Part shown: piece by piece, positions 6,129 through 64,000 of the stretch
Numbering within the stretch: position 1 is the first letter of the stretch
Layout of the letters: every line of letters begins with the position of its first letter
From: Adineta vaga
Lineage: Eukaryota; Animalia; Rotifera
DNA length: 64,000 nt
Assembly (NCBI GenBank): GCA_021613535.1
Contig: CP075493.1
Location: 18,082,848 to 18,146,847 of the forward strand
Reading direction: 5' to 3'
Position numbers and translations under genes: made by a program
Notes under the pieces: generated by a model
Told to the model about the DNA's origin: nothing
Databases searched by the model: none
The model's input: only the letters and a program-made list of their open reading frames with translations

Positions 6129-6159
6129 GTGGGTGAGGGTGTGAGGGTGGGTGAGGGTG
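6129..6159 (+). repeat. Interstitial telomeric tract, mixed TGAGGG/TGGG, G-strand pointing right
   Basis: gtgggtgagggtgtgagggtgggtgagggtg lies at the junction of two unrelated truncated sequences. Confidence 0.8.
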
Positions 6160-7049
6160 CTCTCGCAAGAAAGCAGAAACATTGTTGCTTCAGCAAGTGG
6201 TGTTAGAAACAGCGGCTCTCAAAAAGTGGTACGAGAAATTTTAGAGAAAACAGGACAGAAAGTGAGTTATTCTACGGTTCGTCGTGAACGCCAGCGACAA
6301 GGATTAAAACCATTCCATGTTATTTCAAAGCCACTGAAAACAGTCACACATGTTGAGGATCGAAAATGGCTTGCAAATTTCGTTGCTGACTGGACCGAGG
6401 AAGATTTCCTACATATGGCGCCGTCGGATGAATTTATATCTACGTGATAAGAAAACCAAACCATCAAAACGACAGAATTTGGGCAAAATCTGTTGAAGAC
6501 ATCACCGATGATGAAAGGTACCGTGAAATGGTTCGGAACGCAAAATGCATTGGAATTTTTGTTATGTTCACTGCAAAGAAACTTCTTTGGGTTCTGAAAG
6601 GGGATGGTCAATCATGGAATGGCGCCTATTTTCGTGACTTTATTCTGGAGAAACATGTGATTCCATTTCTGCATAACCTAGTCAATGTTGTTGATACAGA
6701 TGAAGTCATATTTCTTCACGATAAGGCACGCTGTATGAAAGCTAATGCAGCACAACATTTTCTGGAAGATGAAGGAGTGCATTTCTGGAGCAATTCGATT
6801 TGGCCTGGCAATAGTCCTGACACGAATCCTGCAGAGAACATCGGTGCAACTATCAAAGATAGAGTTGAAGAGCTGATGGCAAGTGAAGATCCTCAAGATA
6901 GATACAATTATGACGCTCTCAAAACTAACCTTGAGAGTGTCGTTGAGGAGCTAGAAAACGACACGGATCTTTTTGTTGATTTGCTGTGTTCCATGAGGAA
7001 AAGATTTGACGCTCTCGCAGCTGTCAGAGGAGGTCATACCAATTTCTAA
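6157..7049 (+). pseudogene. DD37E transposase, N-terminally truncated, 1-nt frameshift near 6435
   Basis: HTH remnant VSYSTVRR; D1 in PSDEF; D2 in FLHDKA; E in SPDTNPAENI, with 37 residues between D2 and E. Restoring one T gives EFYIYVIRKPN. Confidence 0.88.
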
Positions 7050-18678: not shown

Positions 18679-19184
18679 CATATATATATGTTTTTTCATA
18701 TTTAATGTTTGCTGTGCAATCTCATTATTCTTTTCTATGTTCATTACTTTCGTTGAGACATATGATATTCAATCAAATCGTTAAGTTGATTTGAAATTTT
18801 TTACCTTCGTTTTTTCAAATGATTGTAATGGAAGAAAATATTTAGCTAGAATTTATTCATACAAAATATTGAGATAATCTTTTTAATACAGATATAGATA
18901 ATAATGTATTCTGAGCAATCGATATTTCTACATTGGTCATATAGAATTTATCAGCATCGAACATCGATGACAAGTTATGTCTATTTAATATCATTGACAA
19001 TGATGATGCCTAAGTGCAATTGATGACTTTCACATGGATCTCATATTTAAATGTAAAACAAATTAATCTTTATAATGATGATTATATAAATTAATTTGCT
19101 AATCTCAACTTTTGCTTCTTCAGCAATCGATCCTTTGTAGTCAACAATTATTTGAATTAATAAGATGTTTTCAATGAATAATAA

Positions 19185-19260
19185 ATGCAGATTTTGCTTT
19201 GCCGACGCGTTTCGTGTATTTATTTTAAAAAAATAAGAAACACTCATCAGGGCTCTGCAC
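19185..19260 (-). ncRNA. Type I hammerhead ribozyme in the Athena 3' UTR
   Basis: The minus strand reads GCC-CTGATGA-GTGT...ACAC-GAAAC-GC-GTC^GGC, with an intact core, stem II, a minimal palindromic stem III (ACGCGT), and stem I GCC/GGC extended by TGCAGA/TCTGCA. Predicted cleavage is between 19204 and 19203. Confidence 0.92.
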
Positions 19261-19482
19261 TTTTTATAAAAATGAAAACGGAAGGAAACAGGCTAGGTTA
19301 ATATATAAAGAAAGTAAAGAAAAGATATATAAAGAAATAGAGAAATCATAGAAATAATAATAACAACATTATTAATATACTATAATAAGTGAATGGAATA
19401 ACTTATATATATATATATAAAAAGATGAATAAGTGAAGAAATGAAGGATTAGAAATCCATAAATGTTTATTATCAAACCTTT

Positions 19483-22979: not shown

Positions 22980-23135
22980 TCATATTGTCTTTGATTAGAT
23001 GATATCTGAATTCTTGAATTCACTTTTGTGAACGATTAAATAGCCTGATACATTGACTTCAATAAATAGAATTACGCCAATAATTAGATGGATTGCTTCT
23101 ATAATTAGATTGATTGCCCCCAAAAGGGGTAGGTG

Positions 23136-26100
23136 TGAGGCATATCACAATGGGTGAGGGTGCTTCGAAAACGTGTTGCCTTTGATGAAAAATTTCATTT
23201 GATGCTACATTTGACTGATGTGCGCCGGAGGTGTGCGCTGTGCGCCGTGCGCCGTGTGTTTTCCTATAGAGCAATGTTAGCCGATGACCTGTAGCGCACA
23301 TTGATATTTTCTCTTGTATTGATAAAAAACCTTCGAAATGATCTCGATTTCTCATCAATACACACTTGTTCTCTATCTTATCATCTTGCCAGAGAGAGAA
23401 TACATATCTCTTCTCTCTTTGCTGCCTCATTCTCCTTGTCCTTGTGCTCAGCTGGCCCTTCGGGCCATGCTTCGCTTCTTTTTCTTTGAAATTTTCTGGA
23501 TTTCTCATCAAAATGCTTGATATCATTCATGTCTTTGTTAGATGATATCTTTCTTGAACATTCACTCTCTGTAATTGTTGATATATGCACACACTTCAAC
23601 AAAGATGTCTCCTCAACAAGTCTTTTGAGCTATATCTCGATAGAATGGGTGAGGGTGTGGGTGGATGTATGAGGGCATATCACAATGGGTGAGGGTGCTT
23701 CGAAAACGTGTTGCCTTTGATGAAAAATTTCATTTGATGCTACATTTGACTGATGTGCGCCGGAGGTGTGCGCTGTGCGCCGTGCGCCGTGTGTTTTCCT
23801 ATAGAGCAATGTTAGCCGATGACCTGTAGCGCACATTGATATTTTCTCTTGTATTGATAAAAAACCTTCGAAATGATCTCGATTTCTCATCAATACACAC
23901 TTGTTCTCTATCTTATCATCTTGCCAGAGAGAGAATACATATCTCTTCTCTCTTTGCTGCCTCATTCTCCTTGTCCTTGTGCTCAGCTGGCCCTTCGGGC
24001 CATGCTTCGCTTCTTTTTCTTTGAAATTTTCTGGATTTCTCATCAAAATGCTTGATATCATTCATGTCTTTGTTAGATGATATCTTTCTTGAACATTCAC
24101 TCTCTGTAATTGTTGATATATGCACACACTTCAACAAAGATGTCTCCTCAACAAGTCTTTTGAGCTATATCTCGATAGAATGGGTGAGGGTGTGGGTGGA
24201 TGTATGAGGGCATATCACAATGGGTGAGGGTGCTTCGAAAACGTGTTGCCTTTGATGAAAAATTTCATTTCGTGCTACATTTGACTGATGTCCGCCGGAG
24301 GTGTGCTCCGGACCTGTGCTCCGTGTGTTTTCCTATAGAGCAGTGTTAGCTGATGAACTGTGGAGCACATTGATATTTTCTCTTGTATTGATAGAAAATC
24401 TTCGAAATTTTCTGGATTTCTCATCAATACACACTTGTTCTCTATCGTATCATCTTGCCGGAGAGAGAATACATATCTCTTCTCTCTTTGCTGCCTCATT
24501 CTCCTTGTCCTTGTGCTCAGCTGGCCCTTCGGGCCATGCTTCGCTTCTTTTTCTTTGAAATTTTCTGGATTTCTCATCAAAATGCTTGATATCATTCATG
24601 TCTTTGTTAGATGATATCTTTCTTGAACATTCACTCTCTGTAATTGTTGATATATGCACACACTTCAACAAAGATGTCTCCTCAACAAGTCTTTTGAGCT
24701 ATATCTCGATAGAATGGGTGAGGGTGTGGGTGGATGTATGAGGGCATATCACAATGGGTGAGGGTGCTTCGAAAACGTGTTGCCTTTGATGAAAAATTTC
24801 ATTTGATGCTACATTTGACTGATGTGCGCCGGAGGTGTGCGCTGTGCGCCGTGCGCCGTGTGTTTTCCTATAGAGCAATGTTAGCCGATGACCTGTAGCG
24901 CACATTGATATTTTCTCTTGTATTGATAAAAAACCTTCGAAATGATCTCGATTTCTCATCAATACACACTTGTTCTCTATCTTATCATCTTGCCAGAGAG
25001 AGAATACATATCTCTTCTCTCTTTGCTGCCTCATTCTCCTTGTCCTTGTGCTCAGCTGGCCCTTCGGGCCATGCTTCGCTTCTTTTTCTTTGAAATTTTC
25101 TGGATTTCTCATCAAAATGCTTGATATCATTCATGTCTTTGTTAGATGATATCTTTCTTGAACATTCACTCTCCTGTAATTGTTGATATATGCACACACT
25201 TCAACAAAGATGTCTCCTCAACAAGTCTTTTGAGCTATATCTCGATAGAATGGGTGAGGGTGTGGGTGGATGTATGAGGGCATATCACAATGGGTGAGGG
25301 TGCTTCGAAAACGTGTTGCCTTTGATGAAAAATTTCATTTGATGCTACATTTGACTGATGTGCGCCGGAGGTGTGCGCTGTGCGCCGTGCGCCGTGTGTT
25401 TTCCTATAGAGCAATGTTAGCCGATGACCTGTAGCGCACATTGATATTTTCTCTTGTATTGATAAAAAACCTTCGAAATGATCTCGATTTCTCATCAATA
25501 CACACTTGTTCTCTATCTTATCATCTTGCCAGAGAGAGAATACATATCTCTTCTCTCTTTGCTGCCTCATTCTCCTTGTCCTTGTGCTCAGCTGGCCCTT
25601 CGGGCCATGCTTCGCTTCTTTTTCTTTGAAATTTTCTGGATTTCTCATCAAAATGCTTGATATCATTCATGTCTTTGTTAGATGATATCTTTCTTGAACA
25701 TTCACTCTCTGTAATTGTTGATATATGCACACACTTCAACAAAGATGTCTCCTCAACAAGTCTTTTGAGCTATATCTCGATAGAATGGGTGAGGGTGTGG
25801 GTGGATGTATGAGGGCATATCACAATGGGTGAGGGTGCTTCGAAAACGTGTTGCCTTTGATGAAAAATTTCATTTGATGCTACATTTGACTGATGTGCGC
25901 CGGAGGTGTGCGCTGTGCGCCGTGCGCCGTGTGTTTTCCTATAGAGCAATGTTAGCCGATGACCTGTAGCGCACATTGATATTTTCTCTTGTATTGATAA
26001 AAAACCTTCGAAATGATCTCGATTTCTCATCAATACACACTTGTTCTCTATCTTATCATCTTGCCAGAGAGAGAATACATATCTCTTCTCTCTTTGCTGC

Positions 26101-29100
26101 CTCATTCTCCTTGTCCTTGTGCTCAGCTGGCCCTTCGGGCCATGCTTCGCTTCTTTTTCTTTGAAATTTTCTGGATTTCTCATCAAAATGCTTGATATCA
26201 TTCATGTCTTTGTTAGATGATATCTTTCTTGAACATTCACTCTCTGTAATTGTTGATATATGCACACACTTCAACAAAGATGTCTCCTCAACAAGTCTTT
26301 TGAGCTATATCTCGATAGAATGGGTGAGGGTGTGGGTGGATGTATGAGGGCATATCACAATGGGTGAGGGTGCTTCGAAAACGTGTTGCCTTTGATGAAA
26401 AAATTTCATTTGATGCTACATTTGACTGATGTGCGCCGGAGGTGTGCGCTGTGCGCCGTGCGCCGTGTGTTTTCCTATAGAGCAATGTTAGCCGATGACC
26501 TGTAGCGCACATTGATATTTTCTCTTGTATTGATAAAAAACCTTCGAAATGATCTCGATTTCTCATCAATACACACTTGTTCTCTATCTTATCATCTTGC
26601 CAGAGAGAGAATACATATCTCTTCTCTCTTTGCTGCCTCATTCTCCTTGTCCTTGTGCTCAGCTGGCCCTTCGGGCATGCTTCGCTTCTTTTTCTTTGAA
26701 ATTTTCTGGATTTCTCATCAAAATGCTTGATATCATTCATGTCTTTGTTAGATGATATCTTTCTTGAACATTCACTCTCTGTAATTGTTGATATATGCAC
26801 ACACTTCAACAAAGATGTCTCCTCAACAAGTCTTTTGAGCTATATCTCGATAGAATGGGTGAGGGTGTGGGTGGATGTATGAGGGCATATCACAATGGGT
26901 GAGGGTGCTTCGAAAACGTGTTGCCTTTGATGAAAAATTTCATTTGATGCTACATTTGACTGATGTGCGCCGGAGGTGTGCGCTGTGCGCCGTGCGCCGT
27001 GTGTTTTCCTATAGAGCAATGTTAGCCGATGACCTGTAGCGCACATTGATATTTTCTCTTGTATTGATAAAAAACCTTCGAAATGATCTCGATTTCTCAT
27101 CAATACACACTTGTTCTCTATCTTATCATCTTGCCAGAGAGAGAATACATATCTCTTCTCTCTTTGCTGCCTCATTCTCCTTGTCCTTGTGCTCAGCTGG
27201 CCCTTCGGGCCATGCTTCGCTTCTTTTTCTTTGAAATTTTCTGGATTTCTCATCAAAATGCTTGATATCATTCATGTCTTTGTTAGATGATATCTTTCTT
27301 GAACATTCACTCTCTGTAATTGTTGATATATGCACACACTTCAACAAAGATGTCTCCTCAACAAGTCTTTTGAGCTATATCTCGATAGAATGGGTGAGGG
27401 TGTGGGTGGATGTATGAGGGCATATCACAATGGGTGAGGGTGCTTCGAAAACGTGTTGCCTTTGATGAAAAATTTCATTTGATGCTACATTTGACTGATG
27501 TGCGCCGGAGGTGTGCGCTGTGCGCCGTGCGCCGTGTGTTTTCCTATAGAGCAATGTTAGCCGATGACCTGTAGCGCACATTGATATTTTCTCTTGTATT
27601 GATAAAAAACCTTCGAAATGATCTCGATTTCTCATCAATACACACTTGTTCTCTATCTTATCATCTTGCCAGAGAGAGAATACATATCTCTTCTCTCTTT
27701 GCTGCCTCATTCTCCTTGTCCTTGTGCTCAGCTGGCCCTTCGGGCCATGCTTCGCTTCTTTTTCTTTGAAATTTTCTGGATTTCTCATCAAAATGCTTGA
27801 TATCATTCATGTCTTTGTTAGATGATATCTTTCTTGAACATTCACTCTCTGTAATTGTTGATATATGCACACACTTCAACAAAGATGTCTCCTCAACAAG
27901 TCTTTTGAGCTATATCTCGATAGAATGGGTGAGGGTGTGGGTGGATGTATGAGGGCATATCACAATGGGTGAGGGTGCTTCGAAAACGTGTTGCCTTTGA
28001 TGAAAAATTTCATTTGATGCTACATTTGACTGATGTGCGCCGGAGGTGTGCGCTGTGCGCCGTGCGCCGTGTGTTTTCCTATAGAGCAATGTTAGCCGAT
28101 GACCTGTAGCGCACATTGATATTTTCTCTTGTATTGATAAAAAACCTTCGAAATGATCTCGATTTCTCATCAATACACACTTGTTCTCTATCTTATCATC
28201 TTGCCAGAGAGAGAATACATATCTCTTCTCTCTTTGCTGCCTCATTCTCCTTGTCCTTGTGCTCAGCTGGCCCTTCGGGCCATGCTTCGCTTCTTTTTCT
28301 TTGAAATTTTCTGGATTTCTCATCAAAATGCTTGATATCATTCATGTCTTTGTTAGATGATATCTTTCTTGAACATTCACTCTCTGTAATTGTTGATATA
28401 TGCACACACTTCAACAAAGATGTCTCCTCAACAAGTCTTTTGAGCTATATCTCGATAGAATGGGTGAGGGTGTGGGTGGATGTATGAGGGCATATCACAA
28501 TGGGTGAGGGTGCTTCGAAAACGTGTTGCCTTTGATGAAAAATTTCATTTGATGCTACATTTGACTGATGTGCGCCGGAGGTGTGCGCTGTGCGCCGTGC
28601 GCCGTGTGTTTTCCTATAGAGCAATGTTAGCCGATGACCTGTAGCGCACATTGATATTTTCTCTTGTATTGATAAAAAACCTTCGAAATGATCTCGATTT
28701 CTCATCAATACACACTTGTTCTCTATCTTATCATCTTGCCAGAGAGAGAATACATATCTCTTCTCTCTTTGCTGCCTCATTCTCCTTGTCCTTGTGCTCA
28801 GCTGGCCCTTCGGGCCATGCTTCGCTTCTTTTTCTTTGAAATTTTCTGGATTTCTCATCAAAATGCTTGATATCATTCATGTCTTTGTTAGATGATATCT
28901 TTCTTGAACATTCACTCTCTGTAATTGTTGATATATGCACACACTTCAACAAAGATGTCTCCTCAACAAGTCTTTTGAGCTATATCTCGATAGAATGGGT
29001 GAGGGTGTGGGTGGATGTATGAGGGCATATCACAATGGGTGAGGGTGCTTCGAAAACGTGTTGCCTTTGATGAAAAATTTCATTTGATGCTACATTTGAC

Positions 29101-32100
29101 TGATGTGCGCCGGAGGTGTGCGCTGTGCGCCGTGCGCCGTGTGTTTTCCTATAGAGCAATGTTAGCCGATGACCTGTAGCGCACATTGATATTTTCTCTT
29201 GTATTGATAAAAAACCTTCGAAATGATCTCGATTTCTCATCAATACACACTTGTTCTCTATCTTATCATCTTGCCAGAGAGAGAATACATATCTCTTCTC
29301 TCTTTGCTGCCTCATTCTCCTTGTCCTTGTGCTCAGCTGGCCCTTCGGGCCATGCTTCGCTTCTTTTTCTTTGAAATTTTCTGGATTTCTCATCAAAATG
29401 CTTGATATCATTCATGTCTTTGTTAGATGATATCTTTCTTGAACATTCACTCTCTGTAATTGTTGATATATGCACACACTTCAACAAAGATGTCTCCTCA
29501 ACAAGTCTTTTGAGCTATATCTCGATAGAATGGGTGAGGGTGTGGGTGGATGTATGAGGGCATATCACAATGGGTGAGGGTGCTTCGAAAACGTGTTGCC
29601 TTTGATGAAAAATTTCATTTGATGCTACATTTGACTGATGTGCGCCGGAGGTGTGCGCTGTGCGCCGTGCGCCGTGTGTTTTCCTATAGAGCAATGTTAG
29701 CCGATGACCTGTAGCGCACATTGATATTTTCTCTTGTATTGATAAAAAACCTTCGAAATGATCTCGATTTCTCATCAATACACACTTGTTCTCTATCTTA
29801 TCATCTTGCCAGAGAGAGAATACATATCTCTTCTCTCTTTGCTGCCTCATTCTCCTTGTCCTTGTGCTCAGCTGGCCCTTCGGGCCATGCTTCGCTTCTT
29901 TTTCTTTGAAATTTTCTGGATTTCTCATCAAAATGCTTGATATCATTCATGTCTTTGTTAGATGATATCTTTCTTGAACATTCACTCTCTGTAATTGTTG
30001 ATATATGCACACACTTCAACAAAGATGTCTCCTCAACAAGTCTTTTGAGCTATATCTCGATAGAATGGGTGAGGGTGTGGGTGGATGTATGAGGGCATAT
30101 CACAATGGGTGAGGGTGCTTCGAAAACGTGTTGCCTTTGATGAAAAATTTCATTTGATGCTACATTTGACTGATGTGCGCCGGAGGTGTGCGCTGTGCGC
30201 CGTGCGCCGTGTGTTTTCCTATAGAGCAATGTTAGCCGATGACCTGTAGCGCACATTGATATTTTCTCTTGTATTGATAAAAAACCTTCGAAATGATCTC
30301 GATTTCTCATCAATACACACTTGTTCTCTATCTTATCATCTTGCCAGAGAGAGAATACATATCTCTTCTCTCTTTGCTGCCTCATTCTCCTTGTCCTTGT
30401 GCTCAGCTGGCCCTTCGGGCCGTTCTTCGCTTCTTTTTCTTTGAAATTTTCTGGATTTCTCATCAAAATGCTTGATATCATTCATGTCTTTGTTAGATGA
30501 TATCTTTCTTGAACATTCACTCTCTGTAATTGTTGATATATGCACACACTTCAACAAAGATGTCTCCTCAACAAGTCTTTTGAGCTATATCTCGATAGAA
30601 TGGGTGAGGGTGTGGGTGGATGTATGAGGGCATATCACAATGGGTGAGGGTGCTTCGAAAACGTGTTGCCTTTGATGAAAAATTTCATTTGATGCTACAT
30701 TTGACTGATGTGCGCCGGAGGTGTGCGCTGTGCGCCGTGCGCCGTGTGTTTTCCTATAGAGCAATGTTAGCCGATGACCTGTAGCGCACATTGATATTTT
30801 CTCTTGTATTGATAAAAAACCTTCGAAATGATCTCGATTTCTCATCAATACACACTTGTTCTCTATCTTATCATCTTGCCAGAGAGAGAATACATATCTC
30901 TTCTCTCTTTGCTGCCTCATTCTCCTTGTCCTTGTGCTCAGCTGGCCCTTCGGGCCATGCTTCGCTTCTTTTCTTTGAAATTTTCTGGATTTCTCATCAA
31001 AATGCTTGATATCATTCATGTCTTTGTTAGATGATATCTTTCTTGAACATTCACTCTCTGTAATTGTTGATATATGCACACACTTCAACAAAGATGTCTC
31101 CTCAACAAGTCTTTTGAGCTATATCTCGATAGAATGGGTGAGGGTGTGGGTGGATGTATGAGGGCATATCACAATGGGTGAGGGTGCTTCGAAAACGTGT
31201 TGCCTTTGATGAAAAATTTCATTTGATGCTACATTTGACTGATGTGCGCCGGAGGTGTGCGCTGTGCGCCGTGCGCCGTGTGTTTTCCTATAGAGCAATG
31301 TTAGCCGATGACCTGTAGCGCACATTGATATTTTCTCTTGTATTGATAAAAAACCTTCGAAATGATCTCGATTTCTCATCAATACACACTTGTTCTCTAT
31401 CTTATCATCTTGCCAGAGAGAGAATACATATCTCTTCTCTCTTTGCTGCCTCATTCTCCTTGTCCTTGTGCTCAGCTGGCCCTTCGGGCCATGCTTCGCT
31501 TCTTTTTCTTTGAAATTTTCTGGATTTCTCATCAAAATGCTTGATATCATTCATGTCTTTGTTAGATGATATCTTTCTTGAACATTCACTCTCTGTAATT
31601 GTTGATATATGCACACACTTCAACAAAGATGTCTCCTCAACAAGTCTTTTGAGCTATATCTCGATAGAATGGGTGAGGGTGTGGGTGGATGTATGAGGGC
31701 ATATCACAATGGGTGAGGGTGCTTCGAAAACGTGTTGCCTTTGATGAAAAATTTCATTTCGTGCTACATTTGACTGATGTCCGCCGGAGGTGTGCTCCGG
31801 ACCTGTGCTCCGTGTGTTTTCCTATAGAGCAGTGTTAGCCGATGACCTGTAGCGCACATTGATATTTTCTCTTGTATTGATAAAAAACCTTCGAAATGAT
31901 CTCGATTTCTCATCAATACACACTTGTTCTCTATCTTATCATCTTGCCAGAGAGAGAATACATATCTCTTCTCTCTTTGCTGCCTCATTCTCCTTGTCCT
32001 TGTGCTCAGCTGGCCCTTCGGGCCATGCTTCGCTTCTTTTTCTTTGAAATTTTCTGGATTTCTCATCAAAATGCTTGATATCATTCATGTCTTTGTTAGA

Positions 32101-35100
32101 TGATATCTTTCTTGAACATTCACTCTCTGTAATTGTTGATATATGCACACACTTCAACAAAGATGTCTCCTCAACAAGTCTTTTGAGCTATATCTCGATA
32201 GAATGGGTGAGGGTGTGGGTGGATGTATGAGGGCATATCACAATGGGTGAGGGTGCTTCGAAAACGTGTTGCCTTTGATGAAAAATTTCATTTGATGCTA
32301 CATTTGACTGATGTGCGCCGGAGGTGTGCGCTGTGCGCCGTGCGCCGTGTGTTTTCCTATAGAGCAATGTTAGCCGATGACCTGTAGCGCACATTGATAT
32401 TTTCTCTTGTATTGATAAAAAACCTTCGAAATGATCTCGATTTCTCATCAATACACACTTGTTCTCTATCTTATCATCTTGCCAGAGAGAGAATACATAT
32501 CTCTTCTCTCTTTGCTGCCTCATTCTCCTTGTCCTTGTGCTCAGCTGGCCCTTCGGGCCATGCTTCGCTTCTTTTTCTTTGAAATTTTCTGGATTTCTCA
32601 TCAAAATGCTTGATATCATTCATGTCTTTGTTAGATGATATCTTTCTTGAACATTCACTCTCTGTAATTGTTGATATATGCACACACTTCAACAAAGATG
32701 TCTCCTCAACAAGTCTTTTGAGCTATATCTCGATAGAATGGGTGAGGGTGTGGGTGGATGTATGAGGGCATATCACAATGGGTGAGGGTGCTTCGAAAAC
32801 GTGTTGCCTTTGATGAAAAATTTCATTTGATGCTACATTTGACTGATGTGCGCCGGAGGTGTGCGCTGTGCGCCGTGCGCCGTGTGTTTTCCTATAGAGC
32901 AATGTTAGCCGATGACCTGTAGCGCACATTGATATTTTCTCTTGTATTGATAAAAAACCTTCGAAATGATCTCGATTTCTCATCAATACACACTTGTTCT
33001 CTATCTTATCATCTTGCCAGAGAGAGAATACATATCTCTTCTCTCTTTGCTGCCTCATTCTCCTTGTCCTTGTGCTCAGCTGGCCCTTCGGGCCATGCTT
33101 CGCTTCTTTTTCTTTGAAATTTTCTGGATTTCTCATCAAAATGCTTGATATCATTCATGTCTTTGTTAGATGATATCTTTCTTGAACATTCACTCTCTGT
33201 AATTGTTGATATATGCACACACTTCAACAAAGATGTCTCCTCAACAAGTCTTTTGAGCTATATCTCGATAGAATGGGTGAGGGTGTGGGTGGATGTATGA
33301 GGGCATATCACAATGGGTGAGGGTGCTTCGAAAACGTGTTGCCTTTGATGAAAAATTTCATTTGATGCTACATTTGACTGATGTGCGCCGGAGGTGTGCG
33401 CTGTGCGCCGTGCGCCGTGTGTTTTCCTATAGAGCAATGTTAGCCGATGACCTGTAGCGCACATTGATATTTTCTCTTGTATTGATAAAAAACCTTCGAA
33501 ATGATCTCGATTTCTCATCAATACACACTTGTTCTCTATCTTATCATCTTGCCAGAGAGAGAATACATATCTCTTCTCTCTTTGCTGCCTCATTCTCCTT
33601 GTCCTTGTGCTCAGCTGGCCCTTCGGGCCATGCTTCGCTTCTTTTTCTTTGAAATTTTCTGGATTTCTCATCAAAATGCTTGATATCATTCATGTCTTTG
33701 TTAGATGATATCTTTCTTGAACATTCACTCTCTGTAATTGTTGATATATGCACACACTTCAACAAAGATGTCTCCTCAACAAGTCTTTTGAGCTATATCT
33801 CGATAGAATGGGTGAGGGTGTGGGTGGATGTATGAGGGCATATCACAATGGGTGAGGGTGCTTCGAAAACGTGTTGCCTTTGATGAAAAATTTCATTTGA
33901 TGCTACATTTGACTGATGTGCGCCGGAGGTGTGCGCTGTGCGCCGTGCGCCGTGTGTTTTCCTATAGAGCAATGTTAGCCGATGACCTGTAGCGCACATT
34001 GATATTTTCTCTTGTATTGATAAAAAACCTTCGAAATGATCTCGATTTCTCATCAATACACACTTGTTCTCTATCTTATCATCTTGCCAGAGAGAGAATA
34101 CATATCTCTTCTCTCTTTGCTGCCTCATTCTCCTTGTCCTTGTGCTCAGCTGGCCCTTCGGGCCATGCTTCGCTTCTTTTCTTTTTGAAATTTTCTGGAT
34201 TTCTCATCAAAATGCTTGATATCATTCATGTCTTTGTTAGATGATATCTTTCTTGAACATTCACTCTCTGTAATTGTTGATATATGCACACACTTCAACA
34301 AAGATGTCTCCTCAACAAGTCTTTTGAGCTATATCTCGATAGAATGGGTGAGGGTGTGGGTGGATGTATGAGGGCATATCACAATGGGTGAGGGTGCTTC
34401 GAAAACGTGTTGCCTTTGATGAAAAATTTCATTTGATGCTACATTTGACTGATGTGCGCCGGAGGTGTGCGCTGTGCGCCGTGCGCCGTGTGTTTTCCTA
34501 TAGAGCAATGTTAGCCGATGACCTGTAGCGCACATTGATATTTTCTCTTGTATTGATAAAAAACCTTCGAAATGATCTCGATTTCTCATCAATACACACT
34601 TGTTCTCTATCTTATCATCTTGCCAGAGAGAGAATACATATCTCTTCTCTCTTTGCTGCCTCATTCTCCTTGTCCTTGTGCTCAGCTGGCCCTTCGGGCC
34701 ATGCTTCGCTTCTTTTTCTTTGAAATTTTCTGGATTTCTCATCAAAATGCTTGATATCATTCATGTCTTTGTTAGATGATATCTTTCTTGAACATTCACT
34801 CTCTGTAATTGTTGATATATGCACACACTTCAACAAAGATGTCTCCTCAACAAGTCTTTTGAGCTATATCTCGATAGAATGGGTGAGGGTGTGGGTGGAT
34901 GTATGAGGGCATATCACAATGGGTGAGGGTGCTTCGAAAACGTGTTGCCTTTGATGAAAAATTTCATTTGATGCTACATTTGACTGATGTGCGCCGGAGG
35001 TGTGCGCTGTGCGCCGTGCGCCGTGTGTTTTCCTATAGAGCAATGTTAGCCGATGACCTGTAGCGCACATTGATATTTTCTCTTGTATTGATAAAAAACC

Positions 35101-53100: not shown

Positions 53101-56100
53101 CAACAAAGATGTCTCCTCAACAAGTCTTTTGAGCTATATTCGATAAGAATGGGTGAGGGTGTGGGTGGATGTATGAGGGCATATCACAATGGGTGAGGGT
53201 GCTTCGAAAACGTGTTGCCTTTGATGAAAAATTTCATTTATGCTACATTTGACTGATGTGCGCCGGAGGTGTGCGCTGTGCGCCGTGCGCCGTGTGTTTT
53301 CCTATAGAGCAATGTTAGCCGATGACCTGTAGCGCACATTGATATTTTCTCTTGTATTGATAAAAAACCTTCGAAATGATCTCGATTTCTCATCAATACA
53401 CACTTGTTTCTCTATCTTATCATCTTGCCAGAGAGAGATACATATCTCTTCTCTCTTTGCTGCCTCATTCTTCTTGTCCTTGTGCTCAGCTGGCCCTTCG
53501 GGCATGCTTCGCTTCTTTTCTTTGAAATTTTCTGGATTTCTCATCAAAATGCTTGATATCATTCATGTCTTTGTTAGATGATATCTTTCTTGAACATTCA
53601 CTCTCTGTAATTGTTGATATATGCACACACTTCAACAAAGATGTCTCCTCAACAAGTCTTTTGAGCTATATCTCGATAGAATGGGTGAGGTGTGGGTGGG
53701 ATGTATGAGGGCATATCACAATGGGTGAGGTGCTTCGAAAACGTGTTGCCTTTGATGAAAAATTTCATTTGATGCTACATTTGACTGATGTGCGCCGGAG
53801 GTGTGCGCTGTGCGCCGTGCGCCGTGTGTTTTCCTATAGAGCAATGTTAGCCGATGACCTGTAGCGCACATTGATATTTTCTCTTGTATTGATAAAAAAC
53901 CTTCGAAATGATCTCGATTTCTCATCAATACACACTTGTTCTCTATCTTATCATCTTGCCAAGAGAGAAATACATATCTTCTCTCTTTGCTGCCTCATTC
54001 TCCTTGTCCTTGTGCTCAGCTGGCCCTTCGGGCCATGCTTCGCTTCTTTTTCTTTGAAATTTTCTGGATTTCTCATCAAAATGCTTGATATCATTCATGT
54101 CTTTGTTAGATGATATCTTTCTCTTGAACATTCACTCTCTGTAATTGTTGATATATGCACACACTTCAACAAAGATGTCTCCTCAACAAGTCTTTTGAGC
54201 TATATCTCGATAGAATGGGTGAGGGTGTGGGTGGATGTATGAGGGCATATCACAATGGGTGAGGGTGCTTCGAAAACGTGTTGCCTTTGATGAAAAATTT
54301 CATTTGATGCTACATTTGACTGATGTGCGCCGGAGGTGTGCGCTGTGCGCCCGTGCGCCGTGTGTTTTCCTATAGAGCAATGTTAGCCGATGACCTGTAG
54401 CGCACATTGATATTTTCTCTTGTATTGATAAAAAACCTTCGAAATGATCTCGATTTCTCATCAATACACACTTGTTCTCTATCTTATCATCTTGCCAGAG
54501 AGAGAATACATATCTCTTCTCTCTTTGCTGCCTCATTCTCCTTGTCCTTGTGCTCAGCTGGCCGCTTCGGGCCATGCTTCGCTTCTTTTTCTTTGAAATT
54601 TTCTGGATTTCTCATCAAAATGCTTGATATCATTCATGTCTTTGTTAGATGATATCTTTCTGAACATTCACTCTCTGTAATTGTTGATATATGCACACAC
54701 TTCAACAAAGATGTCTCCTCAACAAGTCTTTTGAGCTATATCTCGATAGAATGGGTGAGGGTGTGGGTGGATGTATAGAGGGCATATCACAATGGGTGAG
54801 GGTGCTTCGAAAACGTGTTGCCTTTGATGAAAAATTTCATTTGATGCTACATTTGACTGATGTGCGCCGAGGTGTGCGCTGTGCGCCGTGCGCCGTGTGT
54901 TTTCCTATAGAGCAATGTTAGCCGATGACCTGTAGCGCACATTGATATTTTTCTCTTGTATTGATAAAAAACCTTCGAAATGATCTCGATTTCTCATCAA
55001 TACACACTTGTTCTCTATCTTATCATCTTGCCAGAGAGAGAATACATATCTCTTCTCTCTTTGCTGCCTCATTCTCCTTGTCCTTGTGCTCAGCTGGCCC
55101 TTCGGGCCATGCTTCGCTTCTTTTTCTTTGAAATTTTCTGGATTTCTCATCAAAATGCTTGATATCATTCATGTCTTTGTTAGATGATATCTTTCTTGAA
55201 CATTCACTCTCTGTAATTGTTGATATATGCACACACACTTCAACAAAGATGTCTCCTCAACAAGTCTTTTGAGCTATATCTCGATAGAATGGGTGAGGGT
55301 GTGGGTGGATGTATGAGGCATATCACAATGGGTGAGGGTGCTTCGAAAACGTGTTGCCTTTGATGAAAAATTTCATTTGATGCTACATTTGACTGATGTG
55401 CGCCGGAGGTGTGCGCTGTGCGCCGTGCGCCGTGTGTTTTCCTATAGAGCAATGTTAGCCGATGACCTGTAGCGCACATTGATATTTTCTCTTGTATTGA
55501 TAAAAAACCTTCGAAATGATCTCGATTTCTCATCAATACACACTTGTTCTCTATCTTATCATCTTGCCAGAGAGAGAGAATACATATCTCTTCTCTCTTT
55601 GCTGCCTCATTCTCCTTGTCCTTGTGCTCAGCTGGCCCTTCGGGCCATGCTTCGCTTCTTTTTCTTTGAAATTTTCTGGATTTCTCATCAAAATGCTTGA
55701 TATCATTCATGTCTTTGTTAGATGATATCTTTCTTGAACATTCACTCTCTGTAATTGTTGATATATGCACACACTTCAACAAAAGATGTCTCCTCAACAA
55801 GTCTTTTGAGCTATATCTCGATAGAATGGGTGAGGGTGTGGGGTGGATGTATGAGGGCATATCACAATGGGTGAGGGTGCTTCGAAAACGTGTTGCCTTT
55901 GATGAAAAAATTTCATTTGATGCTACATTTGACTGATGTGCGCCGGAGGTGTGCGCTGTGCGCCGTGCGCCGTGTGTTTTCCTATAGAGCAATGTTAGCC
56001 GATGACCTGTAGCGCACATTGATATTTTTCTCTTGTATTGATAAAAAAACCTTCGAAATGATCTCGATTTCTCATCAATACACACTTGTTCTCTATCTTA

Positions 56101-59100
56101 TCATCTTGCCAGAGAGAGAATACATATCTCTTCTCTCTTTGCTGCCTCATTCTCCTTGTCCTTGTGCTCAGCTGGCCCTTCGGCCATGCTTCGCTTCTTT
56201 TTCTTTGAAATTTTCTGGATTTCTCATCAAAATGCTTGATATCATTCATGTCTTTGTTAGATGATATCTTTCTTGAACATTCACTCTCTGTAATTGTTGA
56301 TATATGCACACACATTCAAACAAAGATGTCTCCTCAACAAGTCTTTTGAGCTATATCTCGATAGAATGGGTGAGGGTGTGGGTGGATGTATGAGGGCATA
56401 TCACAATGGGTGAGGGTGCTTCGAAAACGTGTTGCCTTTGATGAAAAATTTCATTTGATGCTACATTTGACTGATGTGCGCCGGAGGTGTGCGCTGTGCG
56501 CCGTGCGCCGTGTGTTTTCCTATAGAGCAATGTTAGCCGATGACCTGTAGCGCACATTGATATTTTCTCTTGTATTGATAAAAACCTTCGAAATGATCTC
56601 GATTTCTCATCAATACACACTTGTTTCTCTATCTTATCATCTTGCCAGAGAGAGAATACATATCTCTTCTCTCTTTGCTGCCTCATTCTCCTTTCCTTGT
56701 GCTCAGCTGGCCCTTCGGGCCATGCTTCGCTTCTTTTCTTTGAAATTTTCTGGATTTCTCATCAAAATGCTTGATATCATTCATGTCTTTGTTAGATGAT
56801 ATCTTTCTTGAACATTCACTCTCTGTAATTGTTGATATATGCACACACTTCAACAAAGATGTCTCCTCAACAAGTCTTTTGAGCTATATCTCGATAGAAT
56901 GGGTGAGGGTGTGGGTGGATGTATGAGGGCATATCACAATGGGTGAGGGTGCTTCGAAAACGTGTTGCCTTTGATGAAAAATTTCATTTGATGCTACATT
57001 TGACTGATGTGCGCCGGAGGTGTGCGCTGTGCGCCGTGCGCCGTGTGTTTTCCTATAGAGCAATGTTAGCCGATGACCTGTAGCGCACATTGATATTTTT
57101 CTCTTGTATTGATAAAAAACCTTCGAAATGATCTCGATTTCTCATCAATACACACTTGTTCTCTATCTTATCATCTTGCCAGAGAGAGAATACATATCTC
57201 TTCTCTCTTTGCTGCCTCATTCTCCTTGTCCTTGTGCTCAGCTGGCCCTTCGGGCCATGCTTCGCTTCTTTTTCTTTGAAATTTTCTGGATTTCTCATCA
57301 AAATGCTTGATATCATTCATGTCTTTGTTAGATGATATCTTTCTTGAACATTCACTCTCTGTAATTGTTGATATATGCACACACTTCAACAAAGATGTCT
57401 CCTCAACAAGTCTTTTGAGCTATATCTCGATAGAATGGGTGAGGGTGTGGGTGGATGTATGAGGGCATATCACAATGGGTGAGGGTGCTTCGAAAACGTG
57501 TTGCCTTTGATGAAAAATTTCATTTGATGCTACATTTGACTGATGTGCGCCGGAGGTGTGCGCTGTGCGCCGTGCGCCGTGTGTTTTCCTATAGAGCAAT
57601 GTTAGCCGATGACCTGTAGCGCACATTGATATTTTCTCTGTATTGATAAAAACCTTCGAAATGATCTCGATTTCTCATCAATACACACTTGTTCTCTATC
57701 TTATCATCTTGCCAGAGAGAGAATACATATCTCTTCTCTCTTTGCTGCCTCATTCTCCTTGTCCTTGTGCTCAGCTGGCCCTTCGGGCCATGCTTCGCTT
57801 CTTTTCTTTGAAATTTTCTGGATTTCTCATCAAAATGCTTGATATCATTCATGTCTTTGTTAGATGATATCTTTCTTGAACATTCACTCTCTGTAATTGT
57901 TGATATATGCACACACTTCAACAAAGATGTCTCCTCAACAAGTCTTTTGAGCTATATCTCGATAGAATGGGTGAGGGTGTGGGTGGATGTATGAGGGCAT
58001 ATCACAATGGGTGAGGGTGCTTCGAAAACGTGTTGCCTTTGATGAAAAATTTCATTTGATGCTACATTTGACTGATGTGCGCCGGAGGTGTGCGCTGTGC
58101 GCCGTGCGCCGTGTGTTTTCCTATAGAGCAATGTTAGCCGATGACCTGTAGCGCACATTGATATTTTCTCTTGTATTGATAAAAACCTTCGAAATGATCT
58201 CGATTTCTCATCAATACACACTTGTTCTCTATCTTATCATCTTGCCAGAGAGAGAATACATATCTCTTCTCTCTTTGCTGCCTCATTCTCCTTGTCCTTG
58301 TGCTCAGCTGGCCCTTCGGGCCATGCTTCGCTTCTTTTTCTTTGAAATTTTCTGGATTTCTCATCAAAATGCTTGATATCATTCATGTCTTTGTTAGATG
58401 ATATCTTTCTTGAACATTCACTCTCTGTAATTGTTGATATATGCACACACTTCAACAAAGATGTCTCCTCAACAAGTCTTTTGAGCTATATCTCGATAGA
58501 ATGGGTGAGGGTGTGGGTGGATGTATGAGGGCATATCACAATGGGTGAGGGTGCTTCGAAAACGTGTTGCCTTTGATGAAAATTTCATTTGATGCTACAT
58601 TTGACTGATGTGCGCCGGAGGTGTGCGCTGTGCGCCGTGCGCCGTGTGTTTTCCTATAGAGCAATGTTAGCCGATGACCTGTAGCGCACATTGATATTTT
58701 CTCTTGTATTGATAAAAACCTTCGAAATGATCTCGATTTCTCATCAATACACACTTGTTCTCTATCTTATCATCTTGCAGAGAGAGAATACATATCTCTT
58801 CTCTCTTTGCTGCCTCATTCTCCTTGTCCTTGTGCTCAGCTGGCCCTTCGGGCATGCTTCGCTTCTTTTTCTTTGAAATTTTCTGGATTTCTCATCAAAA
58901 TGCTTGATATCATTCATGCTTTGTTAGATGATATCTTTCTTGAACATTCACTCTCTGTAATTGTTGATATATGCACACACTTCAACAAAGATGTCTCCTC
59001 AACAAGTCTTTTGAGCTATATCTCGATAGAATGGGTGAGGGTGTGGGTGATGTATGAGGGCATATCACAATGGGTGAGGGTGCTTCGAAAACGTGTTGCC

Positions 59101-62100
59101 TTTGATGAAAAATTTCATTTGATGCTACATTTGACTGATGTGCGCCGGAGGTGTGCGCTGTGCGCCGTGCGCCGTGTGTTTTCCTATAGAGCAATGTTAG
59201 CCGATGACCTGTAGCGCACATTGATATTTTCTCTTGTATTGATAAAACCTTCGAATGATCTCGATTTCTCATCAATACACACTTGTTCTCTATCTATCAT
59301 CTTGCCAGAGAGAGAATACATATCTCTTCTCTCTTTGCTGCCTCATTCTCCTTGTCCTTGTGCTCAGCTGGCCCTTCGGGCCATGCTTCGCTTCTTTTTC
59401 TTTGAAATTTTCTGGATTTCTCATCAAAATGCTTGATATCATTCATGTCTTTGTTAGATGATATCTTTCTTGAACATTCACTCTCTGTAATTGTTGATAT
59501 ATGCACACACTTCAACAAAGATGTCTCCTCAACAAGTCTTTTGAGCTATATCTCGATAGAATGGGTGAGGGTGTGGGTGGATGTATGAGGGCATATCACA
59601 ATGGGTGAGGGTGCTTCGAAAACGTGTTGCCTTTGATGAAAAAATTTCATTTGATGCTACATTTGACTGATGTGCGCCGGAGGTGTGCGCTGTGCGCCGT
59701 GCGCCGTGTGTTTTCCTATAGAGCAATGTTAGCCGATGACCTGTAGCGCACATTGATATTTTCTCTTGTATTGATAAAAAAACCTTCGAAATGATCTCTC
59801 GATTTCTCATCAATACACACTTGTTCTCTATCTTATCATCTTGCCAGAGAGAGAATACATATCTCTTCTCTCTTTGCTGCCTCATTCTCCTTGTCCTTGT
59901 GCTCAGCTGGCCCTTCGGGCCATGCTTCGCTTCTTTTTCTTTGAAATTTTCTGGATTTCTCATCAAAATGCTTGATATCATTCATGTCTTTGTTAGATGA
60001 TATCTTTCTTGAACATTCACTCTCTGTAATTGTTGATATATGCACACACTTCAACAAAGATGTCTCCTCAACAAGTCTTTTGAGCTATATCTCGATAGAA
60101 TGGGTGAGGGTGTGGGTGGATGTATGAGGGCATATCACAATGGGTGAGGGTGCTTCGAAAACGTGTTGCCTTTGATGAAAAATTTCATTTGATGCTACAT
60201 TTGACTGATGTGCGCCGGAGGTGTGCGCTGTGCGCCGTGCGCCGTGTGTTTTCCTATAGAGCAATGTTAGCCGATGACCTGTAGCGCACATTGATATTTT
60301 CTCTTGTATTGATAAAAAACCTTCGAAATGATCTCGATTTCTCATCAATACACACTTGTTCTCTATCTTATCATCTTGCCAGAGAGAGAATACATATCTC
60401 TTCTCTCTTTGCTGCCTCATTCTCCTTGTCCTTGTGCTCAGCTGGCCCTTCGGGCCATGCTTCGCTTCTTTTTCTTTGAAATTTTCTGGATTTCTCATCA
60501 AAATGCTTGATATCATTCATGTCTTTGTTAGATGATATCTTTCTTGAACATTCACTCTCTGTAATTGTTGATATATTGCACACACTTCAACAAAGATGTC
60601 TCCTCAACAAGTCTTTTGAGGCTATATCTCGATAGAATGGGTGAGGGTGTGGGTGGATGTATGAGGGCATATCACAATGGGTGAGGGGATGCTTCGAAAA
60701 CGTGTTGCCTTTGATGAAAAATTTCATTTGATGCTACATTTGACTGATGTGCGCCGGAGGTGTGCGCTGTGCGCCGTGCGCCGTGTGTTTTCCTATAGAG
60801 CAACTGTTAGCCGATGACCTGTAGCGCACATTGATATTTTCTCTTGTATTGATAAAAAACTTCGAAATGATCTCGATTTCTCATCAATACACACTGTTCT
60901 CTATCTTATCATCTTGCTAGAGAGAGAAACATATCTCTTCTTCTTTGCTGCTCATTCTCCTTGTCTTGTGCTCAGCTGGCCCTTCGGGCCATGCTTCGCT
61001 TCTTTTCTTTGAAATTTTCTGGATTTCTCATCAAAATGCTTGATATCATTCATGTCTTTGTTGTAGATGATATTCTTTCTTGAACATTCACTCTCTGTAA
61101 TTGTTGATATATGCACACACTTCAATACAAAGATGTCTCTCAACAGTCTTTTGAGCTATATCTCGATAAGAATGGGTGAGGGTGTGGGGTGATGTATGAG
61201 GGCATATCACAATGGGTGAGGGTGCTTCGAAAAAACGTGTTGCCTTTGATGAAAGAAGTTTCATTTGATGCTACATTTGACTGATGTGCGCCGGAGGTGT
61301 GCGCTGTGCGCCGTGCGCCGTGTGTTTTCCTATAGAGCAATGTTAGCCGATACCTGTAGCGCACATTGATATTTTCTCTTGTATTGATTAAAAACACCTT
61401 CGAAATGATCTCGATTTCTCATCAATACACACTTGTTCTCTATCTTATCATCTTGCCAGAGAGAGAGATACATATCTCTTCTCTCTTTGCTGCTCATTCT
61501 CCTTGTCCTTCGTGCTCAGCTGGCCTTCGGGCCATGCTTCGCTTCTTTTCTTTGAAATTTTCTGGATTTCTCATCAAAAATGCTTGATAATCATTCATGT
61601 CTTAGTTAGATGATATCTTTCTTGAACATTCACTCTCTGTAATTGTTGATATATGCACACACTTCAACAAAGATGTCTCCTCAACAAGTCTTTTGAGCTA
61701 TATCTCGATAGAATGGGTGAGGGTGTGGGTGGATAATATGAGGGCATATCACAATGGGTGAGGGTGCTTCGAAAACGTGTTGCCTTTGATGAAAATTTCA
61801 TTTGATGCTACATTTGACTGATGTGCGCCGGAGGTGTGCGCTGTGCGCCGTGCGCCGTGTGTTTCCTATAGAGCAATGTTAGCCGATGACCTGTAGCGCA
61901 CATTGATATTTTCTCTTGTATTGATAAAAACCTTCGAAATGATCTCGATTTCTCATCAATACACACTTGTTCTCTATCTTATCATCTTGCCAGAGAGATA
62001 CATATCTCTTCTCTCTTTGCTGCCTCATTCTCCTTGTCCTTGTGCTCAGCTGGCCCTTCGGGCCGTGCTTCCGCTTTCTTTTCTTTGAAATTTTCTGGAT

Positions 62101-64000
62101 TTCTCATCAAAATGCTTGATATCATTCATGTCTTTGTTAGATGATATCTTTCTTGAACATTCACTCTCTGTAATTGTTGATATATGCACACACTTCAACA
62201 AGATGTCTCCTCAACAAGTCTTTTGAGCTATATCTCGATAGAATGGGTGAGGGTGTGGGTGGATGTATGAGGGCATATCACAATGGGTGAATGCTTCGAA
62301 AACGTGTTGCCTTTGATGAAAAATTTCATTTGATGCTACATTTGACTGATGTGCGCCGGAGGTGTGCGCTGTGCGCCGTGCGCCGTGTGTTTTCCTATAG
62401 AGCAATGTTAGCCGATGACCTGTAGCGCACATTGATATTTTCTCTTGTATTGATAAAACCTTCGAAATGATCTCGATTTCTCATCAATACACACTTGTTC
62501 TCTATCTTATCATCTTGCCAGAGAGAATACATATCTCTTCTCTCTTTGCTGCCTCATTCTCCTTGCTTGTGCTCAGCTGGCCCTTCGGGCCATGCTTCAC
62601 TTCTTTTCTTTGAAATTTTCTGGATTTCTCATCAAAATGCTTGATATCATTCATGTCTTTGTTAGATGATATCTTTCTTGAACATTCACTCTCTGTAATT
62701 GTTGATATATGCACACACTTCAACAAAGATGTCTCCTCAACAAGTCTTTTGAGCTATATCTCGATAGAATGGGTGAGGGTGTGGGTGGATGTATGAGGGC
62801 ATATCACAATGGGTGAGGGTGCTTCGAAAACGTGTTGCCTTTGATGAAAAATTTCATTTGATGCTACATTTGACTGATGTGCGCCGGAGGTGCTGTGCGC
62901 CGTGCGCCGTGTGTTTTCCTATAGAGCAATGTTAGCCGATGACCTGTAGCGCACATTGATATTTTCTCTTGTATTGATAAAAACCTTCGAAATGATCTCG
63001 ATTTCTCATCAATACACACACTTGTTCTCTATCTTATCATCTTGCCAGAGAGAATACATATCTCTTCTCTCTTGCTGCCTCATTCTCCTTGTCCTTGTGC
63101 TCAGCTGGCCTTCGGGCCGTGCTTCGCTTCTTTTCTTTGAAATTTTCTGGATTTCTCATCAAAATGCTTGATATCATTCATGTCTTTGTTAGATGATATC
63201 TTTCTTGAACATTCACTCTGTAATTGTTGATATATGCACACACTTCAACAAAGATGTCTCCTCAACAAGTCTTTTGAGCTATATCTCGATAGAATGGGTG
63301 AGGGTGTGGGTGGATGTATGAGGGCATATCACAATGGGTGAGGTGCTTCGAAAACGTGTTGCCTTTGATGAAAAATTTCATTTGATGCTACATTTGACTG
63401 ATGTGCGCCGGAGGTGTGCTGTGCGCCGTGCGCCGTGTGTTTTCCTATAGAGCAATGTTAGCCGATGACCTGTAGCGCACATTGATATTTTCTCTTGTAT
63501 TGATAAAAACCTTCGAAATGATCTCGATTTCTCATCAATACACACTTGTTCTCTATCTTATCATCTTGCCAGAGAGAGATACATATCTCTTCTCTCTTTG
63601 CTGCCTCATTCTCCTTGTCCTTGTGCTCAGCTGGCCCTTCGGGCCGTGCTTCACTTCTTTTCTTTGAAATTTTCTGGATTTCTCATCAAAATGCTTGATA
63701 TCATTCATGTCTTTGTTAGATGATATCTTTCTTGAACATTCACTCTCTGTAATGTTGATATATGCACACTTCAACAAAGATGTCTCCTCAACAAGTCTTT
63801 TGAGCTATATCTCGATAGAATGGGTGAGGGGTGTGGAGTGGATGTATGAGGGCATATCACAATGGGTGAGGGTGCTTCGAAAACGTGTTGCCTTTGATGA
63901 AAAATTTCATTTGATGCTACATTTGACTGATGTGCGCCGGAGGTGTGCGCTGTGCGCCGTGCGCCGTGTGTTTTCCTATAGAGCAATGTTAGCCGATGAC
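23136..64000. repeat. Tandem array of ~76 copies of a 535-bp telomere-associated unit (runs off the window)
   Basis: Period 535 (TGGGTGAGGGTGCTTCG at 23151, 23686, 24221 and onward). Each unit has TGGGTGAGGGTGTGGGTG and a second ATGGGTGAGGGTG 40 bp later. Copies are near-identical to ~35.4 kb and show scattered small indels after that. Confidence 0.98.

Follow-up and report, generated by a model that had tools for sequence, protein, structure and literature searches.

How did a sequence of about 535 bp, repeated some 76 times, come to form the assembled end of a chromosome of the bdelloid rotifer Adineta vaga, and what part was played by the Athena-like retroelement on which the repeats begin? 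The locus lies in a stretch of 64,000 nucleotides (hereafter the window; G000:C1:18082848-18146847) of contig C1 (CP075493.1, 18146847 bp), one of the 6 contigs of a 100.8-Mb assembly (GCA_021613535.1), and since position 64000 of the window is the last base of C1, the array reaches the end of the chromosome as assembled. In the reading we favour, to which we would give an even chance, copies of a single short derivative of the Athena/Terminon type, non-coding and non-autonomous, are stacked at the chromosome terminus, having been seeded by reverse transcriptase (RT) and afterwards amplified in whole units at the DNA level. Judged by its sequence, the unit would have kept an Athena-type 5' leader and a C-rich 3' tail, while open reading frame (ORF) 1, the RT and a working hammerhead ribozyme were lost.

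BLAST of one unit (23201-23735) against the window yielded 76 full head-to-tail copies with partial copies at both edges, spaced at 524-558 bp and 94.7-100% identical to the query, and the autocorrelation of the window peaked at 535, in agreement with the tandem array of more than 40 kb that an earlier note had described from the letters of this DNA alone; Tandem Repeats Finder gave no array call solely since its maximum period was 500. Most of the 24 proximal units are 100% identical to the reference unit, and in the distal ~52 units (from ~36 kb on) indels, most of them singletons, are dispersed through homopolymers and AG runs and look like unpolished long-read error rather than divergence. 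This noise in the distal 28 kb, together with a contig that stops within the repeat, is what would be seen if a short repeat had been over-expanded or misjoined at the contig end, but we consider such an assembly artefact most improbable: in short-read contigs the word depth of the unit is ~5000 against 68-83 for Athena (run X1) and 366-387 against 5.9 (run X15), so that each copy of Athena corresponds to 60-73 units in these two runs, which come from separate studies, and a variant unit (u03, Table 1) has short-read contigs of its own, with depths of 29 (X1) and 12 (X15). No (TGTGGG)n follows the array before the contig stops, and the depth ratio suggests that little of the array is missing from the assembly. 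As had been claimed, the array starts directly at the 5' end of Athena, and because a single X1 short-read contig (23070-23167) bridges this junction, the junction is not a long-read misassembly.

The composition of the unit links it to Athena by more than adjacency. In Athena sense (U1 = 24179, U535 = 23645), U1-165 is colinear with the first ~200 nt of Athena, comprising the 5' untranslated region (UTR), the ATG of ORF1 and the first codons, with a local alignment score of 114 (shuffles 38 +/- 5.6), and this colinearity begins at most ~12 nt from both 5' termini. The whole leader module, U1-223, which includes a conserved TGATGAGAA block and the GC hairpin GGCCCGAAGGGCC, aligns with a score of 144 (shuffles 40 +/- 6) to a short non-coding element (L012) situated 779 kb proximal on the same chromosome. 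The association of unit and Athena proposed earlier is thus borne out by the homology of the 5' 165-223 nt. For U200-480, alignment scores against the Athena 3' UTR and against the hammerhead region of L012 stayed within those of shuffles. At its 3' end the unit reads ...TTTTCGAAG-CACCCTCACCCAT-TGTGATATGCCCTCATACATCCACCCA-CACCCTCACCCAT, so that CACCCTCACCCAT is found twice per unit, on the minus strand only, and on the plus strand the tail appears as a G-rich telomere-like tract (ATGGGTGAGGGTGTGGGTGG...). Relatives from the environment, metagenome contigs L022-L026, contain several modules of the unit, namely the GC hairpin AGCGAAGCATGGCCCGAAGG, a ~52-nt TTGAT[G/A]AGAA..ATCCA tandem module, CACCCTCA motifs and the module U349-395. 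Taken by sequence, the unit is a cut-down non-coding member of an Athena/Terminon-associated family of short elements, not an anonymous satellite.

The whole unit occupies a single locus in the assembly, and its GC hairpin is confined to the array, L012 and a single doubtful site; the family is present at one of the 12 contig ends (C1, right) and in one internal relative. The chromosome-end system considered in the earlier note is not upheld as a general one; the unit array is a local feature of one chromosome end. The single locus would suit an ordinary subtelomeric satellite, in which an old Athena-to-Athena junction piece (leader, telomere tract and tail) was tandem-duplicated and expanded, its RNA-level features being relics, and so would the invariant junctions described below, the lack of a ribozyme and of RNA evidence, and the patchwork of scars left by telomere tracts in the subtelomeres here (one lies at 6127-6160). 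The unit, however, extends from the 5' terminus of the leader to the tail and is not an arbitrary segment, its modules recur in L022-L026 as conserved elements rather than junk, its fold stability is strand-specific, and where the array meets the 5' end of Athena its proximal edge lies within the C-rich tail, which is the position expected from priming; we regard a satellite of this kind as improbable.

The L012 element (L012:5490-6240, G000:C1:17367489-17368239, minus strand) carries its unit-like leader between two canonical minimal hammerheads, preceded on the 5' side by at least five CACCCTCA(AG) motifs and a CACCCACA tract, and is retrozyme-like or pseudo-long-terminal-repeat (pLTR)-like. 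In the environmental contig L026 (L026:1-1520, Ga0136617_10141267), a tandem ~52-54-nt module, GTACATTGAT[A/G]AGAA(GC)ATCCATAGAAATTCAA, which equals the hammerhead look-alike motif of the unit (see below), is accompanied by GC tetraloop hairpins and four GGTTTTTCACCTACCCC repeats; CACCTACCCC is shared by L026 and, on the minus strand at 23126-23135 of the window, by the 5' junction of Athena.

The polarity of the array is that of a chromosome end. On the plus strand of the window, ATGGGTGAGGGTG occurs 127 times, two per clean unit (the first copy running on as ...TGTGGGTGG), and its complement CACCCTCACCC not once, hence the G-rich strand runs 5' to 3' into the chromosome end as in a telomere; both the strand polarity and the two telomere-complementary tracts per unit claimed beforehand are confirmed by these counts. 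The 3' ends of unit and Athena alike face the centromere, as terminal retro-addition predicts. True telomeric repeats terminate one contig end only, the start of C4, where (TGTGGG)n is interspersed with TGAGGG and TGGG variants, and the favoured reading is supported by a plus strand that is G-rich towards the end as at this C4 start. The other ten of the 12 contig ends (C1-C6, L001-L011) finish in unique sequence, so that most physical telomeres lie outside the assembly. The repeat (TGAGGG)n, taken for the telomere repeat in the earlier note, proves to be a genuine interspersed variant at the C4 start, but the canonical repeat of A. vaga is (TGTGGG)n (PMC8494291); (TCACCC)n tails are already known from Terminons (PMC6431247).

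The proximal edge gives a clue to the origin of the array. The first unit begins within its own tail (…GGGGTAGGTG-TGAGG-CATATCACAATGGGTGAGGGTG…), directly on the 5' end of Athena (sense TTTTGGGGGCAATC…), and a truncation inside the tail is the expected start of a telomere-primed cDNA, whereas nothing would direct a random breakpoint of a duplication to that place. Combined with the polarity, and with a unit that spans leader to tail, this edge supports seeding by RT, and we think that reverse transcription in trans probably did seed the array. In such an event, the G-rich 3' end on the 5' end of Athena would anneal to the unit RNA at its tail, where CCCUCA lies, and serve as primer for cDNA made in trans by an Athena-type RT, after which at least one more unit would be added, creating a unit-to-unit junction. 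The predicted minimum free energy (MFE) fold, in which the last 21 nt of the tail are unpaired, and a sense RNA modelled as more stable than its shuffles would be in keeping with this course of events.

How the array then grew to ~70 copies is a separate question, and here the junctions and the variant units are informative (differences between units were counted against the majority letter per column). The ~75 unit-to-unit junctions are identical and none of the 76 units is 5'-truncated, so that 75 separate additions, each capped by telomerase, are excluded; the earlier note had likewise argued against one-by-one addition. Unit u17, located 14 units from u03, is a mosaic of two unit types (Table 1), and, together with the identical junctions and the absence of 5'-truncation, favours expansion at the DNA level. 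Whole units might have been copied by unequal exchange between sisters or homologues, by break-induced replication or by rolling copying of excised repeat circles. Such routes are comparable to those of recombination-maintained telomeres. At present, the array may buffer or cap this single end, the Athena-like leaders of its units being turned towards the proximal Athena. In A. vaga, unequal crossovers cluster at chromosome ends and the homologues of chromosome 1 differ in length (PMC13564844).

A 14-unit higher-order repeat, which u03 and u17 might suggest, was rejected, as no distal unit resembles u03. In both u03 and u17, the GC-rich (GGCGCAC)x3 segment (24271-24462 in u03) is replaced by a version with a CCGGAG/CUCCGG stem, and the predicted local folds of the GC-rich region differ between the two unit types. 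At plus position 234 of the unit (23434 and 24503), contigs of X15, X18 and X1 join a different sequence (...TTTCTTTCCTTCTCACTA), and because the 30-mer of this TTTCTTTCCTTCTCACTA flank is absent from the haploid assembly, it indicates a diverged unit subfamily or another array border outside the assembly. The u03/u17 patches and this further diverged unit type imply that the array drew on more than one template or that unit types recombined.

Invariant junctions and full-length units would also result if RT had built the array, in that the 535-nt sense RNA was a dedicated template, copied many times in one or a few events by an Athena-type RT, which either jumped from the 5' end of the RNA to the next 3' tail or proceeded by rolling-circle reverse transcription, thereby lengthening the end by tens of kb with no telomerase. 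In line with such a process are the phase in which the array starts proximally, the 5' and 3' ends of the unit, both of Athena type, and the first 24 units, almost all of them 100% identical, and also the structured sense RNA with a free C-rich tail and, in the MFE fold, pairing of its 5' and 3' regions; relatives of the unit adjoin canonical hammerheads in L012, and animal retrozymes have been seen as derivatives of Penelope-like elements copied from circles (bioRxiv 10.64898/2026.07.22.740005). The unit, however, has neither a canonical hammerhead core nor an Rfam ribozyme and so no known route to a circle, u03 and u17 require more than one template or recombination, no run on record as RNA holds the unit, and a single array of this sort exists in the genome. 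Construction by RT is, in our view, less likely than amplification at the DNA level. It is rather unlikely, in our estimation, that the unit is a dedicated non-coding template which an Athena-type RT copies onto the end repeatedly in a telomerase-like manner, whereby copying may involve re-alignment on the C-rich tail or rounds of a circle. A template of this sort implies a minus-strand RNA of ~535 nt, or multimers of it, starting near TCTATCGAG and ending in ...GCCCUCA or ...CACCCAU, and if the unit is a mobile healer of ends, additions at healed breaks should begin with TGAGGGCATATCACAATGGGTGAGGGTG.

The strand-specificity mentioned above derives from folding: RNA of the Athena-sense unit has a z of -3.0 (0 of 100 shuffles as good) and predicted pairing of its 5' and 3' regions, and the antisense strand has a z of -0.68, so that the description of the unit as structured stands for the sense RNA but not for its complement. 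With our own hammerhead descriptor (CUGANGA, helix II >= 3 bp, GAAA), no canonical core was found in any unit on either strand, and no Rfam ribozyme class matched the unit at E <= 10; Rfam models, however, also miss the obvious minimal hammerhead of the neighbouring Athena (19253-19201), and a blank Rfam result is uninformative for this kind. Each unit holds two hammerhead look-alikes (TTGATGAG...GAAG/AAAG) with U3 and G15.1 (or A12), and the same look-alike makes up the ~52-nt tandem module of L026. As hammerheads, these TTGATGAGAAATC...ATTTCGAAG motifs were rejected on account of the U at position 3 and the G at 15.1, one of the two being moreover buried in a 17-bp hairpin. A decayed hammerhead at U440-480, opposite which MAFFT sets the L012 hammerhead at ~50% identity, was too weak a candidate.

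Several points weigh against the reading that we prefer, i.e. RT seeding followed by DNA-level amplification. A template as short as 535 nt may be copied at full length every time, and template jumping or a circular template would also yield invariant junctions, so that favouring the DNA-level step over an RT step is a preference and not a result. Noise prevents real variation from being read in the distal two thirds of the array, and the physical end with its cap is absent from the assembly. The adjacent Athena family has no C-rich tail, so that any use of such tails by its RT would be hypothetical. No sequencing run that holds the unit stretch is on record as RNA; a contig of run X18, which is merely guessed to be RNA, does cross a unit junction, but it shows the same alternative flank as a DNA run.

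Turning to the neighbour itself, the stretch 19051-23125 is, by its sequence, an intact Penelope-like element of the Athena kind that is deficient in endonuclease (EN), although the name Athena is given to it by no source. Its RT shows an RVT_1 match, YIDD, a LPKAHKPGTPLRPIIS motif and an N-terminal LTEEESHLLKLG motif. Of 544 homologues at E <= 0.001, the longer ones align over the entire open frame in one piece, and among the matches listed every species-named one is from a bdelloid rotifer; the claim of an intact RT frame, open from 21360 to 19483, holds. The arrangement of RT and ORF1 in different frames agrees with the frameshift known for Athena (PMC8557442). Only 230 nt separate the end of the RT frame from the hammerhead, which leaves no room for a GIY-YIG EN. 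That hammerhead, the only canonical core within the window, consists of gcc CUGAUGA, helix II, GAAA and a palindromic ACGCGU (helix III) with cleavage after C19204, followed by ggc.

Table 1 Coordinates of the array, its units and the adjoining Athena-like element (positions in the window)
Feature	Position	Strand	Remarks
Athena-like EN-deficient Penelope-like element, full length	19051..23125	-	family 3' terminus ~19051-19055
Hammerhead, canonical minimal type I, Penelope-like kind	19201..19253	-	own descriptor scan
RT reading frame, 625 open codons	19483..21360	-	overlaps ORF1 end in another frame
Athena ORF1, 574 aa	21255..22979	-	low-complexity N-terminal part, no Pfam match
Junction of Athena 5' end and first unit	23117..23141		sense TTTTGGGGGCAATC... 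via GGGGTAGGTGTGAGG; X1 contig 23070-23167
Terminal tandem array, ~76 units of ~535 bp	23133..64000	- (unit sense)	BLAST, autocorrelation, depth ratio
Reference unit U, 5' leader to C-rich tail	23645..24179	-	alignment, fold
C-rich tail and junction, U482-535	23645..23698	-	CACCCTCACCCAT, 27 nt, CACCCTCACCCAT
Imperfect hairpin, ~17 bp, with second TTGATGAGAAATC...ATTTCGAAG motif	23849..23899 (approximate)	-	fold, motif scan
Leader module U1-223	23957..24179	-	homologous to Athena 5' UTR/ORF1 start and to L012 short element
Variant unit u03	24271..24804	-	21 substitutions, all in + unit positions 1-191
Mosaic unit u17	31760..32293	-	10 u03 substitutions (+ positions 1-74), otherwise common type

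In ~20 genomic copies, the homology of this Athena-like family stops ~150 nt past the hammerhead, in ...GATTAATTTGTTTT (19051-19055; L020:1500), and neither the copy in the window nor L020 has a C-rich tail at the family 3' end. The attachment of this EN-less family is therefore not explained by the usual tail, and the annealing of a telomere-complementary 3' stretch, invoked in the earlier note for Athena elements, is not borne out for the family adjacent to the array. In one X1 short-read contig, 192 bp of the Athena 5' UTR and ORF1 start (22878-23069) are swapped for 167 other letters; this contig joins the same first array unit, which suggests that the Athena/array junction exists in a second allele or copy.

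Among known systems, the chains of Athena and Terminon elements at bdelloid telomeres (Gladyshev & Arkhipova 2007; Arkhipova et al. 2017; see the summaries in PMC6431247 and PMC8557442) share with the array the host clade, the proximal orientation of the 3' ends, a C-rich 3' tail of the TCACCC/ACACCC type, attachment to the preceding element at the G-rich tract that caps its 5' end and, for the leader of the unit, homology to the Athena 5' end. Members of these chains, however, bear an RT, are mostly 5'-truncated, are separated by variable short telomeric spacers and have a hammerhead before the tail (PMC6431247), whereas the unit is 535 bp long, has no RT, ORF1 or canonical hammerhead before its tail and is repeated with ~75 identical junctions and at full length throughout. 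Retrozymes of the non-LTR type, i.e. tandem, hammerhead-bearing and non-autonomous derivatives of Penelope-like elements, are known from animals (bioRxiv 10.64898/2026.07.22.740005; PMC7761336), and the unit resembles them in being short, non-coding, in tandem, Penelope-like-derived and presumably RT-dependent, and in having the L012 relative between two minimal hammerheads. It differs from them in its lack of a canonical hammerhead, their defining feature, and in forming a single terminal array with a telomere-complement tail. Retrozyme units are usually of 170-400 nt and dispersed in intergenic DNA.

In Drosophila, HeT-A is specific for telomeres, has no RT of its own and forms head-to-tail arrays with the 3' ends proximal, the RT being supplied in trans, and may thus be seen as the closest functional analogue of the unit. 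HeT-A, however, is ~6 kb long, codes for Gag, uses poly(A) for attachment, is 5'-truncated to a variable extent and serves every chromosome end, while the unit, present at one end, contains no more than an orphan ORF. The closest structural analogues would be the terminal complex satellites of Diptera (the ~340-bp repeats at all ends in Chironomus, the 2L array in Anopheles) and the recombination-based maintenance of telomeres (amplification of Y' in yeast, roll-and-spread in K. lactis, alternative lengthening of telomeres (ALT)). The former share with our array its length, its homogeneity, the complex unit and the position at the extreme end of a chromosome, and the latter would account for invariant junctions by recombination or rolling-circle DNA copying. 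To our knowledge, neither a retroelement leader nor a tail has been demonstrated in any of these units, and, in contrast to Chironomus, the array is present at one of 12 contig ends, with at least one other end carrying (TGTGGG)n.

Penelope-like RTs are the sister group of TERT (PMC8557442), and should the unit act as a template, it would have in common with telomerase RNA that a non-coding RNA with a telomere-complementary stretch is copied onto a G-rich 3' end. The template, however, would be 535 nt instead of ~1.5 short repeats, and its repeated copying would be hypothetical. We know of no dedicated ribonucleoprotein (RNP) for it. The array is not described in PMC8494291, PMC13564844, PMC7943196, PMC6431247 or PMC8557442.

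Athena/Terminon elements of bdelloids are the best living example of retroelements attaching to chromosome ends, and at this locus a short rider with an Athena leader and a telomere-complement tail forms the last 41 kb of a chromosome. If the array was RT-seeded and expanded by recombination, as we favour, A. vaga would possess an end of the dipteran terminal-satellite type beside normal (TGTGGG)n ends. If, on the other hand, the unit were a template in the sense given above, it would represent a natural intermediate between a retroelement at telomeres and an RT with an RNA template building them, that is, a giant-repeat, telomerase-like module of end maintenance in an animal that has ordinary telomeres as well. 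With u03 and u17 as internal markers, existing mutation-accumulation or irradiation lines could reveal how such an end grows and shrinks.

Every clean unit, moreover, holds a basic ORF of 143 aa (23630-24061, minus strand), which starts at an ATG homologous to that of Athena ORF1 and continues through the C-rich tail as far as the following unit; its length exceeds that in each of 500 composition-matched shuffles. As a conserved protein it was rejected, there being no Pfam match and many residues altered in the variant unit. No homologues were detected among 5.8 billion proteins within 0.55-1.75x its length, and its 150 scored matches within the genome all lie inside the array.

Outside the array, the window contains an interstitial telomere-like tract (TGGGTGAGGGTGTGAGGGTGGGTGAGGGTG on the plus strand, 6127-6160) between a minus-strand reading-frame region and a mariner/Tc1-like transposase fragment (ORF 6444-7049), which looks like a healed or re-joined former DNA end. 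Further towards the start, pieces of a hAT-like transposase (zf-BED at 3265-4098, hAT dimerisation domain at 2034-3203) are flanked by GTAC-rich palindromic tandem repeats with 14-43-bp periods (1382-1514 and 4465-4640), and these repeats gave rise to spurious matches to microRNA precursors in Rfam.

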